This document shows positions 35,272 to 43,290 of a stretch of 49,186 bases of DNA, one piece after another. The DNA comes from Neoconidiobolus thromboides FSU 785 (Eukaryota > Fungi > Entomophthoromycota). Under the pieces are notes generated by a model that was not told where the DNA came from, searched no databases, and saw only the letters and a list, made by a program, of their open reading frames with translations. The DNA is taken from NCBI GenBank assembly GCA_025603075.1, contig MU626405.1, positions 1-49,186 of the forward strand, read 5' to 3'. The position numbers and the translations under genes are program-made. The first letter of the stretch is position 1. Every line of letters begins with the position of its first letter.

Positions 35272-35768
35272 AAAGTTAACGTAATTCAGTGGAAACAAAT
35301 ATTAGAAGATCTCTGAGACCATTTCAATCCATCTTAACAAATCAAATTTCTCTTTGATATATAAATCAACTATATCATTATAATAAATATATTTTAAATT
35401 CAATATAGTTTATTTGAGTACTTTGAGTTCACCTTATTGCATTTGAATTACTGTTTATAACATCTTGATAGCTCTAACACTCAATTTCAAGCTTTCTATT
35501 ATTTAATGATGCTTTTAATTCAACAATAACTGAGTGTTTTGGGATTAAAAATGTTTTTGAGTTCATTTAGGAGTACTTGAAGTAATTATTCTCTTCCTTG
35601 ACAACAGGTAATTTAGTTATTTTTATACATGATTACCCAGTAATATATATTTTATTGTTATGTACTTTTTTTTGTTGAGTATGTATGATAGTATATTGTT
35701 AACAAAAACAAATTAAAATACTAAAATATTTTTTTATTAACATTGGGCTTTATTTTAAAGAATATAGC

Positions 35769-35868
35769 ATATGGGGGTACTTTTTGGTTTCATCACTTTT
35801 CCCTTTAAGTACTGTTGAGCAGAAAAAATGCTAGCAAGTTTCTTGAACAAAAAAAGACATTCCCATAC
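35769..35868 (+). mobile_element. MITE copy 15 (diverged, internal deletions)
   Basis: ATAT-GGGGGTA...CATTCCC-ATAC. Confidence 0.8.
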
Positions 35869-36261
35869 ACTCTTCATTAACATTTAGTGCAATAACAGTT
35901 GGAATGTTTGAATCTTATTTACAATCAATGTTGATACTTTTACAGATTTCTTTTATAAATCAACCAGTTCAATCCATTCTTATATTTTAAAGGCATTAGG
36001 TAAATCTCCGATATTGTCGTCAATATTGTTATAAGCAGCTCCTTTTACTATGGGAATATCATAATAATTTGTATGTAATGTAAATACAATGAGTAGAATG
36101 GCTTAGGGTTATTAATACTCTGTTAGAAAAACACCTATCTTTTATATGTTTCACCAATTGCTGTTAGACCTGATATGATGAGACTCACTTAGTTTGCCCA
36201 AAATGGTCACTACCTTAACTTGACCTTTAGTTTTCTCAACTGTAATACCAGTACTTTCATC

Positions 36262-36365
36262 ATGTGAGGGTATTTTTTTAGCTTCATCACTTTTTCTATT
36301 AAGTGCTATTTGAGTGAAAAATTTGTTAGTAAAATTCTTAAACACAAAAATACACTCCCCCATAT
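36262..36365 (+). mobile_element. MITE copy 16
   Basis: ATGT-GAGGGTA...AAGTGCTATTTGAGTG...CACTCCCCC-ATAT. Confidence 0.85.
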
Positions 36366-36507
36366 ACTAGAAATTTACTACTAAATAAATAGTTTTATAA
36401 ATGTTAAGCTTTGTAGTTTAAACCTTCATTTGTTATTATATATAATACCACTATATAGTTAGGCTCTAAAATCAATTATTTTGTATAGCAATTGTTTTTA
36501 TTATAAG

Positions 36508-36972
36508 TCAAGCTCTTTCATCAACTCTCATCTTTTTAAAAGTACTTAATAATTTGTCGATATCCGTTAAATTGTTAAGGGTAGCTACTTCTACTACATA
36601 AGTGTTATAAGCTTCTGTATCTAATTCAAATATGGTAGAATATTCTCGAGCCATTAATATTCCATTAGGATAAAGCTTTTCTTGCATAAATTCCTCTAGT
36701 TGATGGCTAGATCTCGAAAGTTCAGATTTATCCAATATAAACATAATAACTAATACTTTAGCTTTATCTTTAATTGTCTTAATTAAAATAGCAGTTCCTA
36801 CACTATCATAATCGTTGATAGGAATTCCAGATTTAATAAAGTAACCATTAAATGGATCTAATCCACTAAATCTTAAAAGAGCAAAGGCTAATCCAGTGAT
36901 CTCACGTTCCCATTTGGCTTCAAGTGCTATATTAGCTGTTGTTAAAAATATCTCTTTTTCCAGTTCATTCAT
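36508..36972 (-). CDS. Hypothetical protein, array paralogue A (only uninterrupted copy)
   Basis: 154-aa ORF; the frame extends upstream to SSFEGYKR at ~37020; homologous to six neighbouring decayed copies. Confidence 0.55.
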   Translation of the reverse strand: MNELEKEIFLTTANIALEAKWEREITGLAFALLRFSGLDPFNGYFIKSGIPINDYDSVGTAILIKTIKDKAKVLVIMFILDKSELSRSSHQLEEFMQEKLYPNGILMAREYSTIFELDTEAYNTYVVEVATLNNLTDIDKLLSTFKKMRVDERA

Positions 36973-37366
36973 GTTTTTTATTTGTTTTCTTATTACTCTT
37001 TTATAACCTTCAAAAGATGACTTGTATCCTTAGCTAATACTTTATTGACTAAGGAAGTCAATCTAAAACAGCATCCAATAAGGTAAATGATGAATTTTAA
37101 AGAAACGCATAATAATTGGCAAATAATTAAGTAATAGATGTTAACTTAGTTTTTATTATTTTGGATTATAATAAATATATAGTGTAAGGCTTTTTATCAT
37201 GTAATTTTTTACTCGCATTTTGATGAAAGGATAATATACTAAGAGGCTATTATTATTTAGATTTTTATCCTTATCAAGTTTAAATTAAAGCTTAAGTATA
37301 CCCAATTTATTTTAGAATCAGGTTCCAGTAGCAATATCCTTATGTAGCAGCATCCTCTATTGCAAA

Positions 37367-37920
37367 TCAAGCGCTTTAATCAATTCTCATCTTTTTAGAA
37401 ACGTTCAGAAATTCATTGATATGAGTTAAATTATATTATAGATGGCTTCTTATACTACCTGAGCGTCTATATTTAATAAAATATAATGGAGGAGCTTGGA
37501 TTCATTAATACTCTATAAAAAAATCAGTATTTTGTATATACTTGGCTAAATGCTCTTCAGATTTTGTAAAATTTGATTTGTCCCAATTACATTCAATTGC
37601 TAATACTTTGGTCCTATCTGTAGGTTTCTGGACCATAGTATTAGCATATATATTACTATTATAGTCAATATAAATGTTTTTAATACGAAAGCAATCATCA
37701 TTATCTAATCCAATGAATTTCAAAAGAGCAGTCACTAATTCAATGGCATTATCATCCAATCTAGCATAAGGCGCAGTGTTTGTCGTTGTTGTTAATCTTT
37801 CCTTTTGAATTTCATCTATATTTTGATTTTGAGTTTGTATATTATTCTTTTTATAGTTGTCAAAAGATGAAACTTATATCCTTAGTTAATAATCAACTAG
37901 TTAAAAATATACACTAACCT
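37367..37920 (-). pseudogene. Array paralogue B (frameshifted)
   Basis: SSFDNYKK...AIELVTALLKFIGLD...KVLAIECNWDKS..., then VLMNPSSS and NNLTHINEFLNVSKKMRID*SA* in shifted frames. Confidence 0.75.
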
Positions 37921-38261
37921 ACTTAATACGCATTAAATACAGTATAGAAAAGACACATATAATTAGTAAACATTACATAATAATTGCTCTTAGTTTTTGT
38001 TAGCTTTGGATTATGATAATAATATGAATTACTGTTAAGACTCTTTTTATTGTAGAAACTGTTTATTATTCTTTAATTGTAATTCCATTTATATTATTAT
38101 AAAAAAATTTAAGTAGTAAAAATATATTAGAAATTCTTAGTTAAGTAAATAATTTTATTAACATTAGGCATTATAAGTCAAATTCTATTTATAGTTATAT
38201 ATATTATCATCTAAATGAAAAACCCTGGTGTAAATATTTTTATATAGCAGGTTTATTTATA

Positions 38262-38835
38262 TCAATCAGCTTCGTTGATTCCTATGGCTTTAAGAATATT
38301 TAATAAATTGTTAGGATCATCAATATTTTTATGGAGGGTCCCTTCTACTATAGGAACACCACTGGCAACTTCAAAGGATTTAAAAACGATAGAGGAGCTT
38401 GGAGACATCAATACTCCATATGGAAAATATTCACCTTGTATAAATCCAGCCAGGTGTCAAGGTCCTGTAAATTGAGACTTTTTATCTGATTTACATTCAA
38501 TAACTAATATTTTAATACTATATTTGTTTGATTCGACCGTAATATTGATGCTTCTATCATCATTATTGCCGATAAGAATTACATATTTAATGAAGTAAAC
38601 ATTAAATGTATCTAATCCGTTAAAGCTCAAAAGAACAAATGCTAATCTAATAACATTGGTTTTCTGTTTGTTTCAAGCCCCTTATTGGCTACTATTAAAA
38701 ACGTTTCTTTCTGTGATTGATTGATCTTTTATTTTATTTTAGAAGTATACTTATATTGCTCTTTTTATAGCTTTCAAAGGATAGCTTATATCAATAGCTA
38801 ATACTTAATTAAGCCAGTAAGTTAATCTAAGGCAA
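38262..38835 (-). pseudogene. Array paralogue C
   Basis: QKETFLIVAN / IRLAFVLLSFNGLDTFNVYFIK...KILVIECKSDK...*HLAGFIQGEYFPYGVLMSPSSS...NNLLNILKAIGINEAD*. Confidence 0.75.
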
Positions 38836-39011
38836 TAAACAGCAAAAGCACCGTTAGGCGCTATAAAAACATATTACAACTGTACCATCATCAAATGGTT
38901 ATTATCAAGTTAGCCGGTCATTACTCATAGATGTTAAAAACCATTGGAATGGTTATAGTAAGTATTTACATTGTACGGACTATAATTACCTTGTGGTTAT
39001 CAAAAGTTTAA

Positions 39012-39117
39012 ATATGGGGATGTATTTTTGTGTTTAAGAATTTTACTAACAATCTTTTCACTCAAATAATGCTTAAAAGATGGAAAAAGTAATTAGGCCA
39101 AAAAAACATCCCCATAT
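39012..39117 (-). mobile_element. MITE copy 17 (inside the paralogue array)
   Basis: ATAT-GGGGATG...CATCCCC-ATAT. Confidence 0.9.
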
Positions 39118-39256
39118 ACTGAAAATTTAATATTAAATAAATAGCTTTACTAATATGAAGTTTATAATTTAAATCTGTTTATAAATGTGTATGATATTAT
39201 TTCAAATTTAAGTTCCAGTAGCAGCATTTTTATATAACAGTTTTCTTTATTATAGG

Positions 39257-39760
39257 TCAACCGGTTCTATCAGTTCCCATGCTTTTAAGAGCATTCAATA
39301 AAACATCAAAATCTGTTACATTGTTACATGTAACATTTTCTACAATAGAGACGTTGGGGAAATCAACATTCAAAGTAGACATAGTAGGAGAATTCGGAGT
39401 CATTAATATTCCCTTATGATAAAGCTTACTTTGCATATAACCCACCGGTTGTTGTTTGAATCCTATGATTTAATACTCACCTAATTTACACATAATAATC
39501 AACGCTTTATCTTCATCTTTAATTATTTTGGGTACAATATCAGACCCATCATTATTCCCATTATTGAGCTTTAGACATAGTTGTGTAACCATTATGATAA
39601 CATAGTCCACTAAATTCTAAAAAACAAAATGTCAATACAATAGTATCACCATTTGATCTAGTACTAAACGCTTTATTTATTATAGTCATCAAAATCTCCA
39701 TCTGTGAATCGTTTATCCTTTATTTTATATTAGACTTTGTTTTTTATTTTGTTTGTAGGA
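39257..39760 (-). pseudogene. Array paralogue D
   Basis: QMEILMTIINKA...LTFCFLEFSGL / GSDIVPKIIKDEDKALIIMCKLGEY*...GYMQSKLYHKGILMT...NNVTDFDVLLNALKSM. Confidence 0.75.
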
Positions 39761-40700
39761 GAGTAAAAATTAAAAACAAACCTTACTCAATAGTCAATTG
39801 CTTAAAAAGAAATACTTATCGTAATCAACTGCTATTTTTATATCTGCCAAGCTAAACCATAAATAATACAAAAAACTCAACATAATGAAATAAAGTCAAT
39901 ACATGACAAAAAGATCTAATCAAATACCTGTTACTTGGTCTATTTCACATTAATTATTATATTTTTCTGACAAATTTAGCTAAAAATATGATGGTTAATA
40001 TGAAACAGACCAAGTATTACTTTAATAAAATGGTAACTATATTTTATGGCATACTTAATTATAGCACCATATAACATAACTAATTCTGATGGTACACATT
40101 AAGATAACCCCTTAGGTCTATGGGAAACTGAAATAATCGTAGCATAAATAACCACTAAAAGATATAAAGAGTGTTTCTATACGATAGCCTTTTGAATATA
40201 TTATTAAAATAGTAATCGAATTGTTATTATAGTAGCTACCTTTTTTATATAATTCGATCTATCTTAATATGTAAGGATCTACTTTCTGTATCTGAACCCG
40301 CTAGTTACATCCTGAAAGCTTTTAGATATTCTCTTAAGCCTCCCACCCACTATGATGTGGTTCCAATTTACCTAATAATTCGGTGTTCTTGGAATTGAAT
40401 ATTGGTTTTGACTTCACTGAAAGATATGAAAAAGAGATACATTTTTCATTGAAAATAAACATTTTAGTATTTTATTTATTCATAATTACTAAACAACATG
40501 GTTTTTATTGGTGTATACTTTTTTGTTTGATATACAAGATAGTTCCTTCGCTTTAATAAAACAAAAAGTAATCAAGAATAAAAAACATATAACACTCTGG
40601 CTGTTTTTTTGAATAACAAATTACTTTAGTGCTATTTCCAGTACAAAGTTTTGTATGTGTTCATTATCAATACTTTTGTATGATCTTTCATTACTGTAAA

Positions 40701-41275
40701 TCAAACAGATTGATCGATTCTCATGTTTTTTGAGAGATTATATAATGTATCAATACAGCTCATATTATGATAAGTAGCTCCTTATATTATAACAACATCT
40801 TGGGCCTCTATATATAGCTTGAGTATTTTGGAATGCCTTCGAGTCATCAATATTCTGTCGAAAGAAAATTTACTTTAGATATATCTTATAATTTGTTGCT
40901 TAAGACTAGTAAGATGAGATTCATCTAGTTCACATAAAATAACCGCAGCTTTAGCCTGAGTTTAATTCTCTCGACCATAATACCAATATTATTATGATTG
41001 TTACTATTGGCCTTACTTTTAGATTTACAAGTATAAGTATTAGAAGGAACTAATCCACTAAAATTTAAAGAAGTATATACTAAGCTACTGACTTCCTTTT
41101 CCATCTAGTATAGAGTACTTTGTTAGATATCATTATTATTATCTCTATATGAACGGTTCATGTTTATTTTACGTTAACGTTTATTTTATTGCTCTATTTA
41201 TACCTTTTAAAAGATGGCTTGTATCCTCAGTTGCTAAACTGATTAAAAAGTTAAGTCAATCTAAAACAGTACGCA
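40701..41275 (-). pseudogene. Array paralogue E
   Basis: EKEVSSLVYTSLNFSGLVPSNTYTCKS / AKAAVILCELDESHL...YI*SKIF / RILMTRRHSKILKL...GATYHNMS / KNMRIDQSV*. Confidence 0.7.
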
Positions 41276-41604
41276 GAAAAACTAATATTAAATACTGTAA
41301 AAAATATAGTGGGGTTTATAAACTATTATACAATTGTTATCCAATATGTATTCTATTACTCTCAAATTATAATCGTGATATGAACTAACTTTTTAATTCT
41401 TTATATTATATCAATTTTTATCGAATCTTAATTTCAATTATATTTATATTATTTTCTGTCAAGTATTTTAAATATTAATCACTTTTTCAACGTTATACTT
41501 TAAACTTTGAAATTTTATTATAAATTTAAATAGAGGTTATTTGAGAATTAAATTTCAATATCAATCTATTTACTCTATCATTATCTAATATAAATTAAAC
41601 AGTT

Positions 41605-42150
41605 TTATTGGTTTTCATACCTCTTTGAAAGCATTAGATAATTCATCCATGTGGAAAATAATACTGTAAGAGATTCCTTCTACTATAAGGGCATCTTAAT
41701 ATTTTTACTTAATATAAACAAATTGGCAAACTTTGGATCCATAAATGCACCATTAAGGAAAAATTATACTTGATATTAGGTTAATAGTTGTTAAAACTTT
41801 AATTAAATTTGCCTAGCTTATGCACAAGAAATAATACTTTGACTTCATTCTTAATTACTTTAATCGTAATGCAGTCTACTTTGTTATTTTTAAATAAATG
41901 TGGTCTTTATCTGCAACTAAGTAGCTGCTCATCTAATCCAATCTAATTCAGTATAATACAACAAAAGTCCCACCAATTCATTGATATCGCTTTCACATCC
42001 ACCATCATTTGCATGTCTAATCATAATAAATAACTTTTTTCTTCATAGCTGGCTTATTTTCTATATTCAAAGTTACTTCACTACTTTTTCATAATTTATA
42101 AAAACAGTAAGACAAATCTTTAGCTATCGACTAATTGATTAATCCACCAA
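41605..42150 (-). pseudogene. Array paralogue F (most decayed)
   Basis: CESDINELVGLLLYYTELD / VDCITIKVIKNEVKVLFLVHKLGK / FLNGAFMDPKFANLFIL / IVEGISY..HMDELSNAFKEV*. Confidence 0.6.
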
Positions 42151-42788
42151 GAGCATATGCCGTATGTATACGCAAAAAAATTTGACTTTAAGCAATTGTA
42201 CAGAGTTTAAACTTTTAATACAAAATTTCAAAATTTAGAGCCTGGGAAGTTGTATAAACTAACTATTAAAGCAAAAAAATTGATGGCAGGAAAATTGATA
42301 CTTTTTGATTTTGATTTATGATAGTTGACAAGTTATAAAAAAAAGTTGGTATAAAACAATACGCAGTAAAAGCAAAAGAGAAAGTTCACGTAACTAATCA
42401 AATCAGTCAATTACTCTAGAGCAAAAACCTTAAGAATTTATTTTTTTTTGTTTACTTTTGAGTGATACTGTATAAAGTACTGTACAAAACACCACTAGTA
42501 TATTTTAATTTTAAGTTATCTGCTAAGTTTTGTTTTTATTGTATAAAATAACGCTATATATTTAGTAACAATTAAGTTATTAGAAAAGCGCTTGAGTTTG
42601 AGACATTTAAAGTGATAGGATAATTAAGCACAAAAGTAATTAAATGATTACTTTTTAATTGTTTAAAAAAATATTACATATCTCACTATTATTTACCATA
42701 ACAATTAAAAACCTTAAAGTTTGTTTAAAAATAAGTATCAATCGTTTTATATGGCAATAGAACTTTACTATAAATCAATTATTAATTT

Positions 42789-43290
42789 TCATACCTTTAA
42801 AAAACTTAATAGATTATCAACACCAACTATATTATTACAAGTGGCCCTTTCTATTATAGCAGTACTATGAGCATTTTTACTTAATGTGAACATAGTAAGG
42901 AAGCTTGGAGTTATCAATATTCTATTAAGATAAAGCTCTATTTATATATATATCCTGTTAGCAGTTGTTTAGATCTTACATGCTTAGGTTCATCTAGTTT
43001 GCATAAAATAATGATATTTTAACTCTATCTTCAATTGTATTAACCATGAATCCAGTACATCCTGTATTTTTATCATCAATATGAACTCCACTTTTAGTAA
43101 GATGACAATTGGGAGATTTAATCTACTAAATTCAAAAAGAACAAATGTCAACTTAATGATTTTGCTTTCTAATCTAACATCAAGTGCAATTCGATCATCT
43201 TTTACTTATTCCTAAACTTATTTTATTCTTATTTGTAGGAAGATCAAAGATTAAACAGCCTTTGTTCAAACTCAGTTGATTAAAAGAGAG
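42789..43290 (-). pseudogene. Array paralogue G
   Basis: IALDVRLESKIIKLTFVLFEFSRL / CHLTKSGVHIDD...FMVNTIEDRVK / IILCKLDEP / NRILITPSFLTMFTL...IERATCN..GVDNLLSFLKV*. Confidence 0.7.

Follow-up and report, generated by a model that had tools for sequence, protein, structure and literature searches.

The described systems closest to the locus reported here are the N-terminal domains of the restriction enzymes BpuSI (3s1s), DrdV (7lo5) and EcoR124I HsdR (2w00), represented in Pfam by BpuSI_N, HSDR_N and HSDR_N_2. Non-catalytic paralogues with the same PD-(D/E)xK fold are also known, namely ERCC1 beside XPF, Eme1 beside Mus81, and Sen15/Sen54 in the tRNA splicing endonuclease. Tandem gene amplification occurs in large DNA viruses. 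Elements resembling nucleocytoplasmic large DNA viruses (NCLDV) are reported to be endogenous across fungal phyla, and a figure legend of the work describing them names Conidiobolus coronatus and Zancudomyces culisetae (PMC7017919). Here we analyse a stretch of 49,186 nucleotides from Neoconidiobolus thromboides FSU 785 (contig MU626405.1, positions 1 to 49,186 of the forward strand, assembly GCA_025603075.1; hereafter the window), which holds eight copies of one gene family, all on the minus strand between positions 35986 and 43190, with a single open frame, that of Copy A. Our analysis indicates that the locus is probably an old tandem array of a small, stand-alone PD-(D/E)xK family that was amplified and then decayed, and whose Copy A is either non-catalytic or the last to decay.

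A tblastn search of the whole window with Copy A recovered, on the same strand as the query, Copy B (37379-37819, E 2e-10), Copy C (38271-38725, E 3e-17), Copy D (39269-39716, E 6e-17), Copy E (40710-41145, E 3e-14) and Copy G (42795-43190, E 1e-8), the rest of the window giving chance-level matches only. A profile made from the significant tblastn pieces served to search for the others: Copy F has very weak support (four collinear pieces, E 0.03-0.6, with a profile made without F), and a new eighth copy, Copy Z, was found as three collinear pieces (E 6e-6 to 2e-3 before it joined the profile). The copies are the following, the three letters at the end of a line being the residues at the catalytic columns.

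35986-36267, minus strand: Copy Z, truncated at its 5' end (profile positions ~54-145, first ~53 codons lost), two frame changes; G/L/K
36508-36972, minus strand: Copy A, intact open reading frame (ORF) of 154 amino acids (coordinates include the stop)
36998-37005, minus strand: TATAAAAG box, 26-33 nt upstream of the Copy A ATG, within upstream sequence that is conserved among units A, B, C and E
37379-37816, minus strand: Copy B, pseudogene with at least two frame changes, ATG changed to ATA; N/E/N
38271-38722, minus strand: Copy C, pseudogene with one frame change and one TGA stop, ATG changed to ATC; N/E/K
39269-39713, minus strand: Copy D, pseudogene with one frame change and one TAA stop, ATG changed to ATA; D/M/K
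40710-41151, minus strand: Copy E, pseudogene with two frame changes and two TAA stops; G/L/E
41621-42036, minus strand: Copy F, the most decayed, four weak collinear pieces in three frames with three frame changes; C/V/K
42795-43190, minus strand: Copy G, pseudogene with three frame changes and several stops; G/L/K

An ATG near the start is kept only in Copies A, G and E, and an ATG together with an open frame only in A. The units are 65-75% identical in DNA (copy pieces were placed on profile columns solely for identity counts and tree building), and because this similarity continues into the 5' and 3' flanks, the repeat unit comprises the gene, its promoter and its 3' flank. One relic, a ninth copy, lies alone and heavily decayed on contig C51 (76708-77061, equal to L006:1714-1848), where one piece matches the profile at E 9e-6; besides it, no additional copy was found in the whole 24.6 Mb assembly. 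The first-pass annotation had described a same-strand tandem array of seven copies of a ~170-aa protein, six of them decayed, and had proposed a genome search for intact members. The array is borne out by tblastn matches at its positions for B, C, D, E and G, and the linear motif string it listed is present in the copies. All seven of its copies were located (F very weakly), but the count is eight, Copy Z having been overlooked; the intact protein is shorter, at 154 amino acids, and seven copies in the window are decayed. The genome search yielded the C51 relic and no second intact copy.

Disabling lesions number at least three in every copy except A, which has none. We compared the assembly with contigs from four public runs (X1, X2, X3 and X5), whose RNA nature is presumed. 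Run X1, from the same strain, has contigs that cover Z, D and portions of B, C, E and F and agree with the assembly there without a single difference or gap. Those of runs X2, X3 and X5, from a second strain or label differing by ~0.7% single-nucleotide polymorphisms (SNPs), cover B, C and D completely and E mostly, and have no indel within any copy covered. Since contigs of two strains carry the same lesions, the lesions are genuine and not assembly errors, which settles the check for indel errors that the first-pass annotation had called for. Its birth-and-death picture, in which the array expanded long ago and most copies then died, likewise holds, with seven of the eight copies decayed. 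The gene would have been amplified in this fungus, most likely via unequal crossing-over, and would then have decayed; the array probably consists of ~0.9-kb units, each with the gene, its own TATA promoter and a 3' flank. The within-array tree is star-like and does not resolve the duplication order; as a parsimony guess, a single E-to-V change may have preceded most duplications.

The nature of the protein emerges from its predicted structure. The ESM Atlas holds an entry identical to Copy A letter for letter, with a predicted template-modelling score (pTM) of 0.87. HsdR_N-type proteins are the structural neighbours of this entry (template-modelling score, TM, 0.66-0.79). An AlphaFold2 (AF2) model of Copy A built on alignment A3, which contains full-length relatives, reached a predicted local distance difference test score (pLDDT) of 85.6 and a pTM of 0.84, and has the core alpha-beta-beta-beta-alpha-beta fold. 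A model built on alignment A1, which contains paralogue fragments only, was useless (pLDDT 47), and the A3 model was used instead. When the AF2 model was compared by VIA-align with 48,161 PDB representatives, the BpuSI nuclease domain came out on top (Z 10.8 over 140 residues), followed by DrdV (10.1), the putative restriction-endonuclease protein 9y1l (9.3), TT1808 (8.5) and EcoR124I HsdR (8.4); beyond the top the list is dominated by PD-(D/E)xK nucleases, with SEN15 at Z 5.5. The sub-threshold Pfam matches most widely shared by the family are PDDEXK_9, HSDR_N_2, HSDR_N, PDDEXK_15 and Cas4: among 11 members, PDDEXK_9 is found in four (best E 1.9e-4), HSDR_N_2 in four (2.3e-3) and HSDR_N in three, all too weak for membership. 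On these models, a PD-(D/E)xK restriction-endonuclease fold is well supported for the Copy A family. The protein had been called unknown, and this stands insofar as no curated model names the family (a Pfam search of Copy A gave no match), while its fold can now be given as PD-(D/E)xK. As to a match with a well-known family, which the first-pass annotation had set against its own reading, fold and clan are well known and the family itself is undescribed.

The comparison with the restriction enzymes can be drawn element by element. BpuSI, DrdV and EcoR124I HsdR have the same fold and element order in their N-terminal domains, that is two N-terminal helices, three strands, a helix and further strands (VIA Z 8.4-10.8 over 119-140 residues). 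In most relatives of the array family the D...ExK motif falls where strand 2 starts and strand 3 ends, with a Q-x-x-x-(Y/F)-M helix after it, and this too is shared with the restriction-enzyme domains. Unlike the type I and IIG enzymes, however, these are stand-alone proteins of ~150 aa, without methyltransferase, helicase or specificity module, and they are eukaryotic or virus-linked; moreover, no family member reaches a Pfam cut-off, and Copy A is without D, E and K. Type I/IIG partner genes (helicase/translocase, methyltransferase, specificity) are absent from 35.5-44.5 kb, where the neighbouring units are copies of A, and a search of this genome with PF13588 gave no match.

Searched exhaustively with phmmer, 1.84 billion representatives yielded eight relatives only. 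A word-indexed protein search gave only Copy A itself and, when used with an alignment, only members already known. The named relatives come from Smittium angustum (PVZ98131, PVZ98727 and PWA01965), Smittium simulii (PVU93579) and Furculomyces boomerangus (PVU89821), PVU93579 bearing the UniRef name 'Restriction endonuclease type IV Mrr domain-containing protein'. P0002, P0004, P0005 and P0007 come from metagenomes or run assemblies and are either unnamed or called 'hypothetical', and the P0008/P0012 cluster consists of relatives on virus-like metagenome contigs. The family is thus very small and previously undescribed, and is found in zoopagomycete fungi, unassigned metagenome sequences and virus-like DNA elements. 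The Harpellales proteins match by sequence at phmmer E 3.6e-12 to 5e-4, have the same length and motifs as the array family, are 21-30% identical with Copy A, and most keep ExK; the one locus examined, that of Smittium simulii, is unlike the array in being an isolated intact gene among housekeeping genes. The relative P0004 (L009:9850-10354, Joint Genome Institute (JGI) sample 3300042649) is damaged by a TAG stop where P0002 has Trp, its called 117-aa gene beginning downstream of that stop, and the family therefore decays in other organisms too.

Most relatives keep the classic, Mg-binding D...ExK motif ('DIMVEV ... VLVIECK'), which is present in P0002, P0004, P0006, P0007 and P0008, and this suggests that the family ancestor would have been a nuclease. 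The catalytic columns of Copy A read A61/M77/I79, so that all three of D, E and K are lost, and the protein is therefore not a conventional nuclease; the full triad is retained in none of the eight array copies. In Smittium angustum, P0003 and P0010 are intact with G/C/K at these columns, hence open but catalytically dead members recur in another species. Judged by its motif, the family qualifies for the PD-(D/E)xK superfamily, with Copy A only as a degenerate member.

Copy A combines an open frame with an ATG, a TATA box and a confident fold prediction, and RNA contigs cover it. The run contigs contain clean short joints with canonical ends, for which reason we took them as RNA-derived and the locus as transcribed on both strands. 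The joints and introns are these.

37201-37260, plus strand: intron, GT..AG (GTAATT...TACTAAG...TTTAG), in RNA antisense to Copies A and B
38464-38517: minor joint inside Copy C
39718-39781, minus strand: intron of 64 nt
39718-40239, minus strand: upstream exon and two introns, part of the RNA running through Copy D
40189-40239, minus strand: intron of 51 nt, GT..AG, in all four runs and two studies

The antisense plus-strand RNA (36479-37971) covers A and B, is spliced in X3 and unspliced in X2, and its intron at 37201-37260 has a yeast-like branch site, TACTAAG. Copy D forms the 3' part of a spliced minus-strand RNA (39161-40440), whose 5' part is the spacer between D and E, in which there is no ORF longer than 42 aa. 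The RNA from both strands of the locus is probably for the most part non-coding. An X5 contig (36494-36991) spans the Copy A coding sequence to within 20 nt at each end; the contigs carry no strand. Introns were also considered as a rescue of the broken copies and rejected, because homology passes straight through the stops; in Copy C the joint at 38464-38517 would remove the ExK strand, and the stop stays. The D-E spacer also contains a near-perfect 85-nt palindrome at 39932-40016.

The array is flanked by ordinary host genes, a PMC-type Ca-ATPase and DGAT1/gpmI, and an Rfam scan of 35.5-43.6 kb gave no match. Three copies of a ~107-nt miniature inverted-repeat transposable element (MITE), with terminal inverted repeats ATATGGGGATGT...ACATCCCCATAT, are found in the window.

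35768-35864: third copy of the ~107-nt element in the window
36255-36365: copy of ~107 nt between the 3' flank of Copy A and the truncated Copy Z, with the terminal inverted repeat ATATGGGGATGT
39012-39122: copy in the 3' flank of Copy D, in the orientation opposite to that at 36255-36365

The element occupies the same relative spot in the 3' flanks of A and D, in opposite orientations, and the truncation point of Copy Z falls exactly at it. A search of the genome gave 2937 first-look candidates, the 40 that were scored being 85-95% identical, and in the run contigs the element causes huge depth spikes and many loose ends.

The relatives P0008 and P0012 lead to a class of virus-like DNA elements. 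They lie on metagenome contigs of 17-22 kb (L014-L016) with dense, intron-free genes, which also carry PolB or protein-primed PolB, an Rpb2-like RNA polymerase subunit, a SNF2-type helicase and small APH-type kinases. The genes on either side of P0012 (135 aa and 151 aa) also belong to the family by profile, giving three adjacent intact paralogues of 135, 163 and 151 aa, and the viral paralogues match the array directly in tblastn (E 3e-12 to Copy A, 4e-8 to Copy C). Among named sequences, those closest to the contig PolB (48-53% identity) come from assemblies of Kickxella, Coemansia and Linderina, and the next, at ~31%, from Mortierellaceae and a pithovirus. Two of the contigs, L014 and L015 (JGI sample 3300025909), have the same right arm, made up of the kinase, three family paralogues, a 605-aa protein, the RNA polymerase and the helicase; their left arms differ in the replicase, which is a classical PolB in one and a protein-primed PolB in the other, and this suggests modular polymerase exchange.

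Decayed relics of the same gene set are present in the genome of N. thromboides itself. One of them (C17:109757-112093) has an Rpb2-like match of 35-37% identity over ~800 aa with four stops, and at another (C85:35.8-48.5 kb) the RNA polymerase and helicase are matched together with the 605-aa protein and PolB. The C17 relic region as a whole extends over 109.7-112.9 kb, and both relics are related to contigs L014 and L015. The family is thus common to this element class and to zoopagomycete chromosomes, and the host genome has been colonised by such elements. Set beside the endogenous NCLDV-like elements of fungi (PMC7017919), the family has relatives in a three-gene cluster on virus-like contigs, and relics of that kind also occur in this genome; the array itself, unlike those elements, is without viral neighbours. 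A link between the array and virus-like elements is probable, and the array is possibly virus-derived.

Several of our results weigh against the interpretation that we favour, of an amplified and decayed nuclease family whose Copy A is non-catalytic or last to decay. Foldseek against PDB gave no match at E <= 0.001, though it placed restriction-endonuclease entries at probability 0.99, profiles from A1 and A3 run against PDB sequences gave nothing meaningful, and the nuclease activity of family members is predicted only. The RNA contigs over Copy A are strandless, and antisense spliced RNA covers it. When A is one of the pair, dN/dS is 0.6-0.8; between pseudogenes it is 0.3-1.4 (mostly 0.4-0.8), and identity is the same at the three codon positions, ~0.6 each. 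With the divergence near saturation, these values cannot separate A from the pseudogenes. In the star-like tree, the branch of Copy A is not the shortest. Relative to the closest outgroup, P0002, Copy A has 13 unique changes and its siblings 26-29 (p 0.01-0.08), a rate difference that is seen only with this outgroup and is gone with more distant ones. Much of this would suit an array in which all eight copies are dead, Copy A being a pseudogene still without a stop or frameshift and its RNA being noise, antisense or read-through, an explanation that we take seriously while placing it somewhat short of even. The loss of D, E and K in Copy A, the resemblance of its pairs to pseudogene pairs in dN/dS and codon-position identities, the antisense RNA and the failure to find an intact active partner in the genome all speak for it, as does one of the two SNPs in Copy A between strains, the non-synonymous T136M (the other, Y122Y, is synonymous). 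Yet the absence of any lesion in A would have, by our own estimate, a chance of ~2-5% at a Poisson mean of 3-4, and it is only A that has both an ATG and an open frame. A dead A would also sit uneasily with its having about half the unique changes of its siblings against the nearest outgroup, with its confident fold prediction, with the X5 contig that corresponds to its coding sequence +/- 20 nt, and with P0003 of Smittium angustum, which is intact despite its G/C/K. On the interpretation that we favour, Copy A would bind nucleic acid or act as an adaptor without catalysis, or would be the last copy en route to decay, and is not an active nuclease or toxin. Proteins of the ERCC1, Eme1 and Sen15 type likewise keep the nuclease fold after losing catalytic residues, and SEN15 is among the fold matches of Copy A; they partner an active paralogue, however, and none was found in this genome for Copy A.

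Other explanations concern where the array came from and what it was for. The first-pass annotation had inferred birth-and-death evolution of the kind typical of effector, toxin or immunity families, and the array would on that reading be a fast-evolving family of this sort, turning over in an arms race. Such families typically form tandem arrays in which many copies have died, and nuclease folds are common toxin domains. We consider this reading very improbable. Residues 3-17 of Copy A are helix 1 of the fold, aligning to the relatives and to BpuSI, and with the N-terminus so occupied by a conserved helix there is no signal peptide; the catalytic triad is in no array copy, no immunity-like ORF or other partner gene is adjacent, and the divergence between copies looks neutral and not like positive selection. 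The named relatives, moreover, are from insect-gut commensal Harpellales, with the examined locus isolated among housekeeping genes. An endogenous viral gene family, derived from a compact giant-virus-like (NCLDV-like or linear-plasmid-like) element of zoopagomycetes and later amplified and decayed, overlaps with our favoured interpretation and adds an origin to it; we regard this as possible but rather doubtful. The three adjacent intact paralogues on dense, intron-free contigs with PolB, Rpb2-like polymerase, helicase and kinases, their direct matches to Copies A and C, the closeness of the contig PolB to Kickxella, Coemansia and Linderina assemblies, the relics at C17 and C85, and the reported presence of NCLDV-like elements across fungal phyla (PMC7017919) are all consistent with it. 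On the other side, the window holds no viral hallmark gene, nothing of the L014 type except the family itself matching it, and host genes flank the array; the two relics, at C17 and C85, have no family copy beside them, the PolB genes of Coemansia and Kickxella have none within 10 kb, and no relative was found in IMG/VR with P0012 as query. Viral and fungal sequences also interleave in a weakly supported family tree, which leaves the direction of transfer undecided. A still bolder version, which we consider a long shot, starts from a compact, capsid-poor giant-virus-like element that infects zoopagomycete fungi or did so in the past: the host would have captured its multi-copy nuclease family, and the array would be what is left of it. 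It would now serve the host either through dead Copy A, as a decoy subunit poisoning the related viral nuclease, or through sense and antisense RNAs of the dead copies, feeding RNA interference against elements of this kind.

The tandem array of a decayed nuclease family, the interpretation that we favour, changes how the locus should be viewed. It can be dropped from the candidate virulence or toxin systems of an insect pathogen, and what was an 'unknown' protein is now defined as a new, very small family with a restriction-endonuclease fold. The family provides a marker gene for tracing exchange between early-diverging fungi and poorly known DNA viruses, and in the array, as a natural series, a nuclease can be followed through all stages of its decay. 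Should selection on Copy A be demonstrated, the protein would be a compact case of a nuclease fold reused non-catalytically.

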